From Macrostomum lignano (taxonomy: Eukaryota): a stretch of DNA of 64,000 nt. Below, piece by piece: positions 16,427 through 22,721 of the stretch. Position numbers and translations under genes: made by a program. Numbering within the stretch: position 1 is the stretch's first letter; the number at the start of each line of letters is the position of its first letter. The stretch is from positions 256,859-320,858 of the forward strand of contig NIVC01001281.1 of assembly GCA_002269645.1 (NCBI GenBank), read 5' to 3'. The notes under the pieces are model-generated. The model was not told the origin of the DNA. It worked only from the letters and a program-made list of their open reading frames with translations, and did not search any database.

Positions 16427-17438
16427 GATTGCTAATCTAGCCTATCATGGGTGCAGGAATAGAATGGATTGCTAATCTAGCCTATCATGGATGCAGGAAT
16501 AGAATGGATTGCTAATCTAGCCTATCATGGATGCAGGAATAGAATGGATTGCTAATCTAGCCTATCATGGGTGCAGGAATAGAATGGATTGCTAATCTAG
16601 CCTATTATGGGTGCAGGAATAGAATGGATTGCTAATCTAGCCTATCATGGATGCAGGAATGGAATGGATTGCTAATCTAGCCTATCATGGGTGCAGGAAT
16701 AGAATGGATTGCTAATCTAGCCTATCATGGGTGCAGGAATAGAATGGATTGCTAATCTAGCCTATTATGGGTGCAGGAATAGAATGGATTGCTAATCTAG
16801 CCTATCATGGATGCAGGAATGGAATGGATTGCTAATCTAGCCTATCATGGGTGCAGGAGTAGAATGGATTGCTAATCTAGCCTATCATGGGTGCAGGAAT
16901 AGAATGGATTGCTAATCTAGCCTATCATGGGTGCAGGAATAGAATGGATTGCTAATCTAGCCTATCATGGATGCAGGAATGGAATGGATTGCTAATCTAG
17001 CCTATCATGGGTGCAGGAATAGAATGGATTGCTAATCTAGCCTATCATGGATGCAGGAATAGAATGGATTGCTAATCTAGCCTATCATGGGTGCAGGAAT
17101 AGAATGGATTGCTAATCTAGCCTATCATGGGTGCAGGAATAGAATGGATTGCTAATCTAGCCTATCATGGATGCAGGAATAGAATGGATTGCTAATCTAG
17201 CCTATCATGGGTGCAGGAATAGAGTGGATTGCTAATCTAGCCTATCATGGGTGCAGGAATAGAATGGATTGCTAATCTAGCCTATCACGGATGCAGGAAT
17301 AGAATGGATTGCTAATCTAGCCTATCATGGGTGCAGGAATAGAATGGATTGCTAATCTAGCCTATCATGGGTGCAGGAATAGAATGGATTGCTAATCTAG
17401 CCTATCACGGATGCAGGAATAGAATGGATTGCTAATCT
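16427..17438. repeat. 40-bp minisatellite array 1, about 25 copies
   Basis: Unit gattgctaatctagcctatcatgg(g/a)tgcaggaatagaatg. It ends about 22 nt before the GNPNAT1 acceptor. Confidence 0.96.
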
Positions 17439-17461
17439 ACGCATTCTCCTCGCCACTCCAG

Positions 17462-20342
17462 GCGTCAAACCCGCATGCGAACGGAGAGTGCAGCGGGGAA
17501 CCGGTAGATGAGGAGTTTCTATTTGACCCGCAGCTCCTGTTCGACCTGGACTGGGCCGGACTGAAATCCCGCACCCCTGTGACCGCCTGCGGAACCATGG
17601 GCGACCTGCGGCTCAGGCCTCTTAGCAGCCTCGACTTTGACCGGGGTGAGTGCAGGTCATCAGGATACTTTAAGTTTCCTGATTCTCCAGTCACAGCAGT
17701 GGATTGCCCAATCACAGCATCGGATTCCCCGGTCACACCGGATTCCCCAGTCATAGTACCGAATTCCCCTGTCGCATCGGATGATCGGATTCCCCAGTCA
17801 CACCGAATTCCCCAGTCACATAAAATTCCCCAGTCACACCGGATTCCCCAGTCACAGCAGCGGATTTCCCAGTCAGCAGCGGATTCCCCAGTCACAGCAG
17901 CGGATTTCCCAGTCACACCAGATTCCCCAGTCACAGCAGCAGATTTCCCAGTCACACCGGATTCCCCAGTCACAGAAGCGGATTCCCCAGTCACACCGGA
18001 TTCCCCAGTCACAGCAGCGGATTCCCCAGTCACACTGGATTCCCCAGTCACACCGAATTCCCCAGTCACAGCAGCGGATTCCCCAGGCACACCGGATTCC
18101 CCAGTCACACCGAATTCCCCAGTCACACCGGATTTTCCAGTCACACCGGATTCCCCAGTCACAGCAGCGGATTCCCCAGTCACACCGAATTCCCCAGTCA
18201 CAGCAGCGGATTCCCCAGTCACACCGGATTCCCCAGTCACACCGGATTCCCTAGTCACAGCAGCGGATTCCCCAGTCACACCGGATTCCCCAGTCACAGC
18301 AGCGGATTCCCCAGTCACACCGAATTCCCCAGTCACAGCAGCGGATTCCCCAGTCACACCGGATTCCCCAGTCACACCGGATTCCCTAGTCACAGCAGCG
18401 GATTCCCCAGTCACACCGGATTCCCCAGTCACAGCAGCGGATTCCACAGTCAGCAGCGGATTCCCCAGTCACACCGGATTCCACAGTCAGCAGCGGATTC
18501 CCCAGTCACACCGGATTCCACAGTCAGCAGCGGATTCCCCAGTCACACCGAATTCCCCAGTCACATCAGCGGATTTCCCAGTCACACCGGATTTCCCAGT
18601 CACACCGGATTCCCCAGTCACACCGGATTCCACAGTCAGCAGCGGATTCCCCAGTCACATCAGCGGATTTCCCAGTCACACCGGATTTCCCAGTCACACC
18701 GGATTCCCCAGTCACACCGGATTCCCCAGTCACATCAGCGGATTTCCCAGTCACACCGGATTCCACAGTCACACCGGATTCCACAGTCACACCGGATTCC
18801 ACAGTCACACCGAATTCCCCAGTCACACCGGATTCCACAGTCACACCGGATTCCACAGTCAGCAGCGGATTCCCCAGTCACACCGAATTCCCCAGTCACA
18901 CCGGATTCCACAGTAAGCAGCGGATTCCCCAGTCACACCGGATTCCACAGTCAGCAGTGGATTCCCCAGTCAGCAGCGGATTCCCCAGTCACACCGGATT
19001 CCACAGTCAGCAGCGGATTCCCCAGTCACACCGAATTCCCCAGTCACACCGGATTCCACAGTAAGCAGCGGATTCCCCAGTCACACCGGATTCCACAGTC
19101 AGCAGCGGATTCCCCAGTCACACCGGATTCCACAGTCAGCAGCGGATTCCCCAGTCACACCGAATTCCCCAGTCACAGCAGCGGATTCCCCAGTCACACC
19201 GGATTCCACAGTCAGCAGCGGATTCCCCAGTCACACCGGATTCCACAGTCAGCAGCGGATTCCCCAGTCACACCGGATTCCACAGTCAGCAGCGGATTCC
19301 CCAGTCACACCGGATTCCACAGTCAGCAGCGGATTCCCCAGTCACACCGGATTCCCCAGTCACACCGGATTCCCCAGTCACACCGGATTCCCCAGTCACA
19401 CCGGATTCCCCAGTCACACCGGATTCCCCAGTCACAGAAGCGGATTCCCCAGTCACACTGGATTCCCCAGTCACACCGGATTCCACAGTCAGCAGCGGAT
19501 TCCACAGTCAGCAGCGGATTCCCCAGTCACACCGGATTCCACAGTCACACCGGATTCCACAGTCACACCGGATTCCACAGTCACAGCAGCGGATTCCCCA
19601 GTCACACTGGATTCCCCAGTCACACCGGATTCCACAGTCAGCAGCGGATTCCCCAGTCACACCGGATTCCACAGTCAGCAGCGGATTCCCCAGTCACACC
19701 GGATTCCACAGTCAGCAGCGGATTCCCCAGTCACACCGGATTCCACAGTCACACCGGATTCCACAGTCACACCGGATTCCACAGTCACACCGAATTCCCC
19801 AGTCACACCGGATTCCACAGTCACACCGGATTCCACAGTCACACCGGATTCCACAGTCACACTGAATTCCCCAGTCACACCGGATTCCACAGTCACACCG
19901 GATTCCACAGTCACAGCGGATTCCCTGTCCCACAGGCTACATGTCGCTACTGCGGGAGCTGACTGAGACGGGCGACGTCAGCCGGGCGGACTTTCAGCGC
20001 CGCTTCGCCTCGATGCGGGCCTGCCCTGCCACCTACTTTGTTCTGGTGGCGGAGGACACCAGCCAGGACAACCGGCCCGTTGCCACGGCAACGCTGATCC
20101 GCGAGCAAAAGTTCATCAGGGACTGCTGCTGCCGCGGGCACATTGAGGACGTGGCCGTGCTGGAGTCGCACCGGGGCCGCGAGCTGGGAAAGCTGGTGGT
20201 GGCGGGGCTGCTGGCGCTGGCCAGGCGGCTGGGCATCTACAAGGTCAGCCTGGACTGCCACGAGGCCATGGTGCCGTTCTACGAGAAGTTCGGCCTGAAA
20301 AAGTGCAACAGCTTCATGATCGCGCGCTTCGCTGATCGGTGA
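17462..20342 (+). CDS. GNPNAT1: Glucosamine-6-phosphate N-acetyltransferase (GNA1), 2 visible exons, initiator ATG not in these exons
   Basis: Exons 17462-17645 and 19936-20342 joined in phase 1. Sequence [12 protein letters not shown]...[12 protein letters not shown]|[12 protein letters not shown]...[12 protein letters not shown]...GHIEDVAV...RGRELGK...YKVSLDC...FYEKFG matches the GNPNAT1 family throughout. Confidence 0.93.
17680..19920. repeat. 2.2-kb mixed 18/21-bp minisatellite filling the GNPNAT1 intron
   Basis: Units ggattccccagtcacacc and ggattccccagtcacagcagc interleave and run into the 3' splice site. Confidence 0.95.
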
Positions 20343-21109: not shown

Positions 21110-21907
21110 GAATCTAGCCTATCATGGATGCAGGAGTAGAATGGATCGCTAATCTAGCCTATCATGGATGCAGGAGTAGAATGGATCGCTAATCTAGCCT
21201 ATCATGGATGCAGGAATAGAATGGATTGCTAATCTAGCCTATCATGGATGCAGGAATAGAATGGATTGCTAATCTAGCCTATCATGGGTGCAGGAGTAGA
21301 ATGGATCGCTAATCTAGCCTATCATGGGTGCAGGAATAGAATGGATTGCTAATCTAGCCTATCATGGGTGCAGGAATAGAATGGATCGCTAATCTAGCCT
21401 ATCATGGATGCAGGAATAGAATGGATCTCTAATCTAGCCTATCATGGATGCAGGAGTAGAATGGATCGCTAATCTAGCCTATCATGGATGCAGGAATAGA
21501 ATGGATTGCTAATCTAGCCTATCATGGGTGCAGGAATAGAATGGATTGCTAATCTAGCCTATCGTAGGTGCAGGAATAGAATGGATTGCTAATCTAGCCT
21601 ATCATGGGTGCAGGAATAGAATGGATTGCTAATCTAGCCTATCATGGGTGCAGGAATAGAATGGATTGCTAATCTAGCCTATCATAGGTGCAGGAATAGA
21701 ATGGATTGCTAATCTAGCCTATCATGGGTGCAGGAATAGAATGGATTGCTAATCTAGCCTATCATGGGTGCAGGAATAGAATGGATTGCTAATCTAGCCT
21801 ATCATGGGTGCAGGAATAGAATGGATTGCTAATCTAGCCTATCATGGGTGCAGGAATAGAATGGATTGCTAATCTAGCCTATCATGGGTGCAGGAATAGA
21901 ATGGATT
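21110..21907. repeat. 40-bp minisatellite array 2, about 20 copies, same unit and orientation as 16427-17438
   Basis: Unit gattgctaatctagcctatcatgggtgcaggaatagaatg. Confidence 0.96.
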
Positions 21908-22223
21908 GAATAGAAATAGTTAATATATATAATATAAGCAATCTGCAGGGTTTCCCACTGCACAGGTTTTCAGATGCTGCGGAATCTTAGCGCAGTAACC
22001 GGAGATGCTCATTTTTGTTGGGTCCTCAATTAATAATTCAGCAGCCACACGGGCTGTCTGCTGCTAGAAGCCTGCATTTCTGGTTCAGCTTCTTTTTGCT
22101 AATTTCTCAAGGCTCGGTGCCAAAAAGATTGCTTAGGTGCTTGTAGAGTTTTCTTGCTTGGTAGAGCACTGCTGTGTCTTTGTACTCAGTAATGCACAGT
22201 CTTTGTTCCCCCGGGCACTGCAG

Positions 22224-22721
22224 GCCGCAGCCCGCCTGCTCATCCAGCGCTGCCGCTCGGCAAGCCTCCGGCTCGATCCGCCGCCGGCTGCTGCTGAGCA
22301 GCTCCAGGCTGAGCAGCCTCAGGTCGAGCAGCTCAGCATCGGCCGGGGCCTCCTGGTCTTCGTCTGCTTCTTGCGCGACGCCACCGAGTCCACCGTTGAC
22401 GACATCGCCAAGCAGGTCTGCGGCCTCCGCCTGCTGCCAGCTGGCAATGCCGAGTCGCTGACGACGGTGCGCGACCTGCCGGGCGACCTGCTGCTCATCC
22501 CGCACTTCACCCTGGGCGGCAAGCCGAAGTCCGGCCGCTTGCAGTACCACTCGGTGATTGACAAGCAGCGCGGAGGCCAGCTGTTCACCCTGCTGCGGGA
22601 CCGCCTGACCCAGCAGCTGCGGGACACCGGCGGCACGGTTGTTGCGGGACAGTACGGTGCCACCCAGCGGCTGGTCTGTGACTGCCAGGATGGCCCGTTC
22701 TCCCATGTGCTGGAGCTCTGA
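22224..22721 (+). CDS. DTD2: D-aminoacyl-tRNA deacylase 2 / ATD family, single visible exon, no ATG in the frame
   Basis: [13 protein letters not shown]...[10 protein letters not shown]...[19 protein letters not shown]...LQYH...[11 protein letters not shown]...[10 protein letters not shown] aligns by eye with animal DTD2 (ALLQQC, GLVIYVCF, DLPGNILIIPQATLGG, QYH, HGTYGNRQ, NGPFTH). It starts at acceptor ctgcag (22222-22223). Confidence 0.9.

Follow-up and report, generated by a model that had tools for sequence, protein, structure and literature searches.

Start codons from the spliced leader: GNPNAT1 and DTD2 of Macrostomum lignano as a probable case in a free-living flatworm

The spliced-leader AUG in flatworms and other lineages

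Use of the AUG of a trans-spliced leader (SL) as an initiator codon is attributed to Schistosoma and Echinococcus by papers that cite the original work (Cheng et al. 2006, cited in PMC9851317, PMC12582326 and PMC3510090). According to these accounts, in Schistosoma mansoni and S. japonicum (Cheng, Cohen, Ndegwa & Davis 2006, J Biol Chem 281:733) the SL ends in AUG and is joined at a phase-0 acceptor, the recipient open reading frame (ORF) has no genomic AUG 5' of its conserved N-terminus, and a match to orthologues needs the SL methionine, as appears to be the case for GNPNAT1 and DTD2 of Macrostomum lignano. Schistosoma, however, is a parasitic neodermatan that was, on the same accounts, studied by cDNA or translation assay, whereas M. 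lignano is a free-living macrostomorph and our evidence is genomic and annotation-based. In Echinococcus granulosus, a subset of cDNAs requires the SL AUG for an orthologue-matching N-terminus, as GNPNAT1 and DTD2 would, whereas others have a genomic AUG within a few codons, as pirin would if trans-spliced at 14065 or 14071; the SL was observed on those cDNAs, whereas we infer it for the two M. lignano genes (PMC3510090). Leaders also supply the start codon of slORFs in nematodes, Oikopleura and trypanosomes (slORFfinder, PMC9851317), although usually as a near-cognate NUG inside the SL that opens a new or alternative ORF, whereas here a canonical AUG at the SL 3' end would open the conserved main ORF.

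For M. lignano itself, the published SL is 35 nt long (CGGTCTCTTACTGCGAAGACTCAATTTATTGCATG), its 3' end reading ...TTGCATG, then GTAAG; the trans-splice acceptor motif is [T/C]TNCAG and approximately 30 % of genes are trans-spliced, with conserved genes enriched (PMC8629364). The leader exon therefore ends in AUG directly before a GU donor, in agreement with the first-pass annotation, which had taken flatworm SL RNAs to end in AUG. The trans-splicing and operons reported for this species (Ustyantsev & Berezikov 2021, PMC8629364; Wudarski et al. 2017, PMC5730564) resemble the present locus in SL, motif and the involvement of conserved housekeeping genes, and the operons (PMC8629364) are likewise same-strand clusters with spacers inflated by repeats, judged against a 1-kb threshold. 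A term search of these two papers turned up no passage that treats the SL AUG as a start codon.

Reading frames, identity and genomic copies

The window, which is the whole stretch analysed, comprises the last 64 kb of M. lignano Mlig_3_7 contig NIVC01001281.1 (GCA_002269645.1), which it matches at 100 %, so that the first-pass assumption of a flatworm host holds; window positions 17462 and 22224 correspond to contig positions 274320 and 279082. All features below lie on the + strand, and a slash marks a splice junction. The GNPNAT1 frame is preceded by an in-frame TAG (17420..17422) within the final unit of a 40-bp array, followed by the proposed phase-0 trans-splice acceptor CTCCAG (17456..17461). 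The boundary reads ...ccactccag/GCG TCA AAC, with 17462 as the first exon base. Exon 1 (17462..17645) ends ...DFDR in phase 1 before the donor G/GTGAGT; the intron (GTGAGT...CCACAG, 17646..19935) is nearly all an 18/37-bp tandem array (17721-19925), and exon 2 (19936..20342) encodes the GNAT acetyltransferase domain and ends with TGA at 20340-20342. The first genomic in-frame ATG (17597..17599, context ACCATGG) sits 3' of the conserved N-terminal FDPxLL..DW segment, which begins at 17519. Checked base by base, the TAG, the exon start and the position of this ATG were all as first annotated. Two out-of-frame ATGs occur before 17597, at 17475 (10-codon ORF) and 17508 (18-codon ORF), and both ORFs end 5' of it.

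The GNPNAT1 product matched Pfam Acetyltransf_1 (E = 3.3e-14) and shared 42-46 % identity, over approximately 90 % of its length, with most of the annotated animal GNPNAT1 proteins among the matches listed, with the N-terminal motif aligned; orthologue N-termini follow the pattern M-x(2-10)-FD(P)xLL..(D/N)(W/F). Its GNAT domain and metazoan N-terminal FDPxLL..DW segment identify it, at sequence level, as glucosamine-6-phosphate N-acetyltransferase. UniProt A0A1I8I8V0 (P0029, 196 aa), from M. lignano, starts ASNPHANGE without a methionine, the equivalent of 17462, and another M. lignano entry (P0008) has the same start. The GenBank model (P0005, named 'partial') begins at 17474, 12 nt into the exon where there is no splice signal, and therefore the GenBank annotation does not pinpoint 17462, which counts against the proposed junction.

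In DTD2, an in-frame TAG (22134..22136) closes the upstream reading frame, the proposed phase-0 acceptor CTGCAG occupies 22218..22223 and the coding sequence is a single exon (22224..22721) of 165 codons plus TGA (22719-22721). The boundary reads ...gcactgcag/GCC GCA GCC CGC, with 22224 as the first exon base, and none of the 195 codons between TAG 22134 and TGA 22719 is an in-frame ATG; the three ATGs within the exon (22447, 22690 and 22705) are each in frame +1. The same check upheld the earlier description of this ATG-less frame and its start. The GenBank model (P0001; AAARLL...) lacks a methionine and begins exactly at 22224. Pfam Tyr_Deacylase (PF02580) matched with E = 5.4e-24, profile positions 1-144 covering residues 4-164, with the first profile position aligned to residue 4 of AAARLL.... 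The best PDB match was mouse DTD2 (5XAQ, E = 1.2e-18), in which chain residue 8 aligns with the first query residue, whereas other deacylase structures (bacterial, Leishmania and Plasmodium-type) gave E values of at least 9e-7. By these similarities the gene is assigned to animal D-aminoacyl-tRNA deacylase 2 / ATD-like, nearer to animal DTD2 than to DTD1.

Three separate contigs share an identical acceptor and ATG-less coding sequence, and the missing ATG is therefore not a sequencing error. Between the window and a second copy (L001), DTD2 differs by one synonymous and no non-synonymous changes and GNPNAT1 by five synonymous and two non-synonymous changes. The 324 nt 5' of the DTD2 acceptor differ by approximately 17 substitutions and two indels, one of which, of 1 nt and 10 nt before the acceptor, disrupts the upstream frame. 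In the third copy (L004), acceptor and coding sequence are identical. Comparison of the copies indicates that the ATG-less structure is common to three genomic copies and under purifying selection. Duplication is extensive and repeats are abundant in the Mlig_3_7 assembly (PMC5730564) and DTD2 is unannotated in L004, as might be expected if the loci were pseudogenes in decay or artefacts of assembly whose start codons have been lost. We regard this explanation as highly improbable, given intact, identical or near-identical ORFs on three contigs, synonymous changes exceeding non-synonymous ones while the flanks are approximately 5 % different and carry indels, and full-length Pfam domains.

Acceptors, modelled SL-mRNAs and alternative starts

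In both genes, no [T/C]TNCAG other than the named acceptor lies in the stretch that runs from the upstream in-frame stop to the first conserved residue. Pyrimidine content within the allowed interval also peaks at this acceptor, at a fraction of 0.80 in GNPNAT1 and of 0.70 in DTD2, the latter tied with one non-motif AG. The + strand of the window contains 235 copies of YTNCAG; a 100-nt interval has a chance of approximately 0.115 of holding one in phase 0, and the joint chance for both genes is approximately 0.013. The SL gene was not found in the window, and there was no Rfam match.

We propose that GNPNAT1 and DTD2 pre-mRNAs would be trans-spliced to the 35-nt SL (...UUGCAUG) at CTCCAG/17462 and CTGCAG/22224, which would strip outrons packed with an ATG-bearing minisatellite. 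This 40-bp repeat occupies the presumed GNPNAT1 outron (16427..17439; 25 copies, two ATGs per unit), stopping 22 nt short of the acceptor, and recurs in the presumed DTD2 outron (21111..21908; 20 copies), 315 nt 5' of the acceptor. As both acceptors are phase 0, the 3'-terminal AUG of the leader would become codon 1, with predicted products of 166 aa (DTD2) and 197 aa (GNPNAT1). The SL AUG would be the sole possible AUG start of DTD2, and in GNPNAT1 it would be required to translate the N-terminal FDPxLL..DW segment.

In the modelled SL-mRNAs, no AUG precedes the SL AUG, which opens ORFs of exactly these lengths, in frame and with no intervening stop; in the DTD2 model, no other AUG opens an ORF of >41 aa. 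The first-pass annotation had suggested that an added AUG gives natural N-termini, (M)AAARLLIQR... and (M)ASNPHANGE..., and these fit the orthologue alignments, the Pfam profile start and 5XAQ. In the Mlig_3_7 annotation pipeline, peaks of SL-containing reads set the points at which transcripts were cut before TransDecoder was applied (PMC5730564), and the DTD2 model that begins at 22224 is a product of this pipeline.

Alternatively, an ATG-bearing first exon further upstream could be cis-spliced to 17462 and/or 22224, the database models being just 5'-truncated. Both GenBank models are indeed 5'-partial, P0005 by name, and acceptors shared by cis- and trans-splicing have been reported in parasitic flatworms (PMC12582326). 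However, no phase-0 ATG...GT[G/A]AG exon occurs in the 1.9 kb that separate each gene from the next one upstream, and the donors of the other ATG..GT candidates are poor; the earlier failure to find a convincing phase-0 ATG micro-exon thus holds for both intergenic regions when the GT[G/A]AG donor of the species is required. A join of the GNPNAT1 exon 1 donor (phase 1) with the DTD2 acceptor (phase 0) would break the frame, and orthologue N-termini leave no space for another coding exon. A cis-spliced first exon is accordingly judged quite unlikely.

A slightly less improbable, although still unlikely, alternative is that the SL AUG goes unused, with GNPNAT1 translated from ATG 17597 by leaky scanning or re-initiation and DTD2 from a near-cognate codon such as CTG 22218, read from unspliced RNA. 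The earlier statement that neither gene has a usable ATG was correct for DTD2, which has none at all, but too strong for GNPNAT1, as ATG 17597 lies in a perfect ACCATGG context and both out-of-frame upstream ORFs finish before it. Initiation there would yield a 151-aa core enzyme, so that 17597 may serve a shorter isoform or even be the only start used; yeast GNA1 is of about this length and is not known to carry the N-terminal extension. The SL AUG also has U at -3, a weak context that counts against its use (+4 is G in both genes), and CTG 22218 is in frame just 5' of the DTD2 coding start. Against these starts, the metazoan GNPNAT1 motif is encoded 5' of 17597, in a stretch whose sole difference between paralogues is one synonymous change, from which it follows that the stretch is translated; CTG 22218 would require an unspliced outron crowded with upstream ATGs; and initiation at the SL AUG has experimental precedent in flatworms, as related in PMC9851317 and PMC3510090.

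We therefore consider it probable, on genomic and annotation-based support, that GNPNAT1 and DTD2 take their start codon from the terminal AUG of the trans-spliced leader, and we infer that the SL is joined at 17462 and 22224 with ribosomes initiating at its AUG. The suggestion that both housekeeping genes may depend on this codon is supported by the SL end, the acceptors, the Met-less models and the N-termini.

Gene order and significance

On the + strand of the contig, pirin, GNPNAT1, DTD2 and a short-chain dehydrogenase follow one another head to tail in an operon-like cluster. Published operon criteria are same-strand neighbours, trans-spliced downstream genes and a repeat-adjusted intergenic distance of <1 kb (PMC8629364); here, stop-to-next-acceptor distances minus tandem repeats were 455, 1083 and 238 nt, with 3'UTRs still counted in. 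The intervals between pirin, GNPNAT1 and DTD2 contain neither AATAAA nor ATTAAA, so that 3'-end processing of the upstream genes lacks an explanation, a point against the SL reading. At the dehydrogenase 5' end (23878..23983), an AG at 23878-23879 places the exon start at 23880, and the GenBank CDS begins one base past it, at 23881. An SL AUG joined at the exon start would be out of frame and create a 22-codon upstream ORF (uORF), the gene having its own ATG at 23981. At the pirin 5' end (14053..14073), three AGs would allow an exon to start at 14058 (phase 2), 14065 (phase 0) and 14071 (phase 0), and the GenBank model (FSLQRQMSRR...) begins at 14053, 5' of all three. The pirin acceptors at 14064 and 14070 had been described as in frame with an SL AUG; both are phase 0, but the point is irrelevant because pirin has its own ATG at 14071-14073.

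The SL-AUG mechanism has been described in flatworms since 2006, and GNPNAT1 and DTD2 are therefore a clean example of a long-known mechanism rather than a discovery. On balance, we lean towards the view that obligate SL-AUG dependence reaches the early-branching, free-living Macrostomorpha and is fixed in 3/3 homeologous copies of two housekeeping genes, in one operon-like cluster with three leader-AUG roles. If so, the leader AUG would act as required initiator (GNPNAT1 and DTD2), as redundant in-frame AUG (pirin, if trans-spliced) and as uORF-maker (dehydrogenase).

For annotation, the GNPNAT1 and DTD2 models, and probably many other 'partial' ones, would be complete once the SL AUG is added, as pipelines that trim the whole leader would systematically yield Met-less proteins. 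Ab initio predictors would choose wrong starts or fusions, examples here being UniRef models that begin at one of the out-of-frame ATGs (17475 and 17508), together with a GNPNAT1-DTD2 fusion. In the design of M. lignano transgenes, the acceptor of SL-AUG genes must stay in frame. Although the mechanism itself is not new, a free-living, early-branching flatworm would join the taxa that need the SL AUG for translation. If true, this would point to an old ratchet in rhabditophoran flatworms, in which the loss of genomic start codons makes trans-splicing irreversible.

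Gene identities and reading frames

The first-pass annotation had assumed a flatworm host, and this was correct, as locus L002 (contig NIVC01001281.1; contig coordinate = window position + 256858) matched window positions 12224-32839 at 100 % and placed the window at the final 64 kb of this contig of Macrostomum lignano assembly Mlig_3_7. The identities proposed for DTD2 and GNPNAT1 were also upheld. The DTD2 product was identical to the 165 aa GenBank model P0001, which is present on two contigs of GCA_002269645.1, matched the Pfam Tyr_Deacylase domain (E = 5.4e-24) and had mouse DTD2 (5XAQ) as its best solved relative in a structure search. 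The GNPNAT1 product, named 'hypothetical protein BOX15_Mlig009203g33, partial [Macrostomum lignano]' by NCBI, carries a GNAT domain by Pfam and, among the matches listed, shared mostly 42-46 % identity with annotated animal GNPNAT1 proteins. Elsewhere the window holds a cytochrome P450 fragment (623-1732, minus strand, E = 2.7e-33), an ORF weakly matching the L27 domain (37045-38454, plus strand) and a repetitive ORF rich in proline whose Cornifin match is below threshold (49530-50564, plus strand), and minisatellites of 20-80 bp are very abundant throughout.

A base check agreed with the coordinates proposed for DTD2 and with its total lack of an in-frame ATG. On the plus strand, an in-frame TAG at 22134 is followed by the acceptor gcactgcag, directly before GCC, with the exon starting at 22224 (contig 279082) and the frame closing at the TGA at 22719-22721; the three ATGs of the exon all lie in frame +1. 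A 24-bp tandem array of 19 copies (22699-23152) reaches into the DTD2 3' UTR, and its first unit is formed by the final seven codons and stop of the gene (TCC CAT GTG CTG GAG CTC TGA; conserved ...SHVLEL, then stop). It is because of this arrangement that the GenBank CDS range extends to a later TGA (window 22839; 11160 in the paralogous locus L001), yet the product stays at 165 aa; the longer range presumably arises via a spurious 'intron' within the array.

GNPNAT1, also on the plus strand, has an in-frame TAG at 17420, an acceptor ccactccag directly before GCG (exon start 17462, contig 274320), a first exon ending at 17645 (phase 1, donor GTGAGT), a single intron of 2290 nt (17646-19935) and a second exon at 19936-20342. 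Its first in-frame ATG, at 17597, lies 45 codons into the exon and 3' of the conserved N-terminal segment, and is preceded by out-of-frame ATGs at 17475 and 17508; the TAG, the acceptor and the position of ATG 17597 all withstood the same check. The intron is almost wholly an 18/37-bp tandem array (17721-19925, ~117 copies) and measures only ~500 nt in L001 (exon 2 start at L001 7698), so the length of the array varies greatly between copies.

The earlier statement that neither gene has a usable ATG therefore stands for DTD2, with zero in-frame ATGs, but was overstated for GNPNAT1, in which ATG 17597 stands in a perfect ACCATGG context and would yield a product of 151 aa. Yeast GNA1 is of similar length and is not known to carry the N-terminal extension; a short GNPNAT1 isoform starting at 17597 is thus possible. 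The conserved, selectively maintained N-terminal segment of GNPNAT1 can only be translated from the AUG of the spliced leader (SL).

The leader AUG as probable start codon

An AUG-terminated leader had been required of the host, and the published M. lignano SL, CGGTCTCTTACTGCGAAGACTCAATTTATTGCATG, does end in ATG, with GTAAG next in the 109-bp SL gene (PMC8629364). Approximately 30 % of M. lignano genes are trans-spliced, with conserved genes enriched, and trans-splice acceptors are enriched for [T/C]TNCAG (PMC8629364). No SL RNA gene was detected in the whole window by an Rfam gathering scan, and the 35-nt SL sequence had no match within the window with up to 3 mismatches allowed. In both genes, all AGs from the upstream in-frame stop to the first conserved residue were surveyed. 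The sole [T/C]TNCAG site was the acceptor at 22224 for DTD2 and that at 17462 for GNPNAT1, both in phase 0, and each had the top pyrimidine content of its interval (0.70 for DTD2, tied with one non-motif AG, and 0.80 for GNPNAT1). Given 235 motif copies in the window, a phase-0 copy is expected per 100 nt with a probability of ~0.115, and the chance of one in both genes is ~0.013. The 3' part of the SL, ...AATTTATTGCATG, would be joined at 22224 as TTGCATG followed directly by GCCGCAGCCCGCCTG, and at 17462 as TTGCATG followed directly by GCGTCAAACCCGCATG.

The alternative of a cis-spliced first exon supplying the ATG was examined by scanning the sequence between each acceptor and the stop of the preceding gene for ATG-opened frames that reach a GT in phase 0. 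Of the 39 candidate upstream ATG exons, none had the species donor GT[G/A]AG, in line with the failure of the first reading to find a convincing upstream exon of this kind. Splicing from the donor of GNPNAT1 exon 1 into DTD2 at 22224 was also considered and rejected as out of frame.

In the modelled SL-mRNAs of both genes the first AUG is that of the SL. For DTD2, only this AUG opens an ORF of >41 aa; for GNPNAT1, AUGs 2 and 3 open out-of-frame ORFs of 10 and 18 codons and AUG 4 is 17597. The Tyr_Deacylase profile (1-144) corresponds to residues 4-164 of Met-less DTD2, so that with an SL-derived Met it would start at residue 5. Residue 1 of the Met-less protein aligns to residue 8 of mouse DTD2, and in two distant homologues 9 and 10 residues precede the equivalent of RLLIQRC. 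Animal GNPNAT1 N-termini follow the pattern M-x(2-10)-(F/M/L)FD(P/E/K)xLL, and the M. lignano protein would carry 19 residues ahead of FLFDPQLL. Taken together, we consider it likely that DTD2 and GNPNAT1 start from the SL AUG, the case being somewhat better for DTD2 than for GNPNAT1.

Existing gene models and copies of the cluster

The Mlig_3_7 annotation was produced by the TBONE pipeline, in which transcriptional units are split where trimmed SL-containing reads peak, before ORF calling by TransDecoder (PMC5730564). Trimming of the SL takes away the leader ATG, so a gene dependent on it would be expected as a Met-less, 5'-partial CDS running from the acceptor. The GenBank DTD2 CDS agrees with this expectation, beginning exactly at 22224 without Met, and the L001 DTD2 CDS begins at 10001, directly 3' of CAG. 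The GenBank GNPNAT1 model (192 aa, 'partial') starts at CAT 17474, 12 nt into the exon at a place with no AG or splice signal, and this start is therefore no marker of an acceptor. It is common to all three annotated copies (window, L001 at 7020, and L004, on NIVC01000625.1), and our guess is that it reflects the assembler's coverage-based trimming of the transcript end rather than a splice site. The genome at 17474 reads CCGCATG, a repeat of the final five bases of the SL (GCATG).

UniProt A0A1I8I8V0 (P0029, 196 aa), which from its accession series we take to come from the other M. lignano assembly and annotation, begins ASNPHANGE, at the first codon after CTCCAG, as does the protein model P0008. 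Among P0006, P0007 and P0009, UniRef models from poorer copies begin at out-of-frame ATGs (MRTE..., MRSF...), and one UniRef model fuses GNPNAT1 and DTD2 by translating across the acceptor of DTD2 ('...ALQAAARLL'). These three are annotation artefacts, as expected where the true start codon is absent from the genome; misplaced starts and a fusion model are what ab initio predictors produce when given no start codon. Neither the DTD2 protein cluster (1 member) nor the GNPNAT1 cluster (3 members) contained a Met-initiated version or an RNA-seq-derived contig: all members are Met-less and none derives from read assemblies.

The gene cluster is present on three contigs (window, L001 and L004). The window and L004 share the same DTD2 acceptor and full ATG-less CDS, from which L001 differs by one synonymous change; the intact L004 copy (15465-16110) has no GenBank gene annotated. 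For GNPNAT1, 5 synonymous and 2 non-synonymous differences separate the window from L001, and upstream of ATG 17597 there is only one, which is synonymous. That the frames are pseudogenes or sequencing errors was rejected, as the ATG-less CDS is kept across three contigs with few, mostly synonymous, changes. In the 324 nt that precede the DTD2 acceptor, the window and L001 differ by ~17 substitutions and two indels, of 16 nt and 1 nt; the 1-nt indel sits 10 nt before the acceptor and shifts the upstream 'open' frame of L001 out of phase. These differences indicate that the upstream stretch is non-coding and that constraint starts at the acceptor.

Neighbouring genes and other flatworms

Pirin, GNPNAT1, DTD2 and a short-chain dehydrogenase all lie on one strand. 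Their stop-to-acceptor distances, minus tandem repeats, are 455, 1083 and 238 nt, near or below the repeat-adjusted 1 kb threshold used in calling M. lignano operons (PMC8629364), and the four-gene cluster is a plausible candidate operon. No AATAAA or ATTAAA occurs in the pirin-GNPNAT1 (15565-17461) or GNPNAT1-DTD2 (20343-22223) spacers, and two such hexamers (23173 and 23278) follow DTD2 (22722-23900). A 40-bp minisatellite, GATTGCTAATCTAGCCTATCATGGGTGCAGGAATAGAATG, occupies the presumed outrons, the pre-mRNA parts removed by trans-splicing, of GNPNAT1 (16427-17439) and DTD2 (21111-21908) on the plus strand. Its 24-nt core has 32 exact matches, on the plus strand only, and the repeat also occurs in L001, around 5130-6985 and as far as about 9660. 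With two ATGs per unit, an untrimmed 5' leader would contain dozens of upstream AUGs, which fits trans-splicing 'sanitising' the 5' ends.

The pirin acceptors had been placed in frame with the SL AUG. The phases were calculated correctly, but pirin carries an ATG of its own, at 14071, and is independent of the SL. Its candidate exon starts are 14058 (TTTCAG, phase 2, which would make a 64-codon overlapping ORF), 14065 (CTCCAG, phase 0, MRQMSRR...) and 14071 (CGCCAG, phase 0, MMSRR...). The GenBank pirin model begins at 14053, before any of the three AGs, which puts pirin trans-splicing itself in doubt; no M. lignano pirin model was among the 97 matches listed in a protein search with pirin exon 1. 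The dehydrogenase GenBank CDS is 5'-open from 23881, one base past the exon start at 23880 (AG 23878-23879). Joining of the SL at 23880 would put its AUG in the wrong frame for the dehydrogenase, giving a uORF of 22 codons that closes upstream of the gene's own ATG at 23981.

Every reported flatworm SL ends in AUG (PMC12582326). Cheng et al. (2006), as cited in PMC9851317, found the SL AUG in frame in 28 % of trans-spliced Schistosoma mansoni mRNAs and >40 cDNAs that require it. In Echinococcus, 143 of 187 SL-bearing clusters are full length using the SL ATG, and the authors considered this use conserved across Neodermata (PMC3510090). By term search, neither the M. lignano trans-splicing paper (PMC8629364) nor the genome paper (PMC5730564) was found to discuss initiation at the SL AUG, and its use in M. 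lignano DTD2 and GNPNAT1 appears not to have been stated previously in the literature examined. Such a start in these two genes would be a direct application of an already known mechanism.
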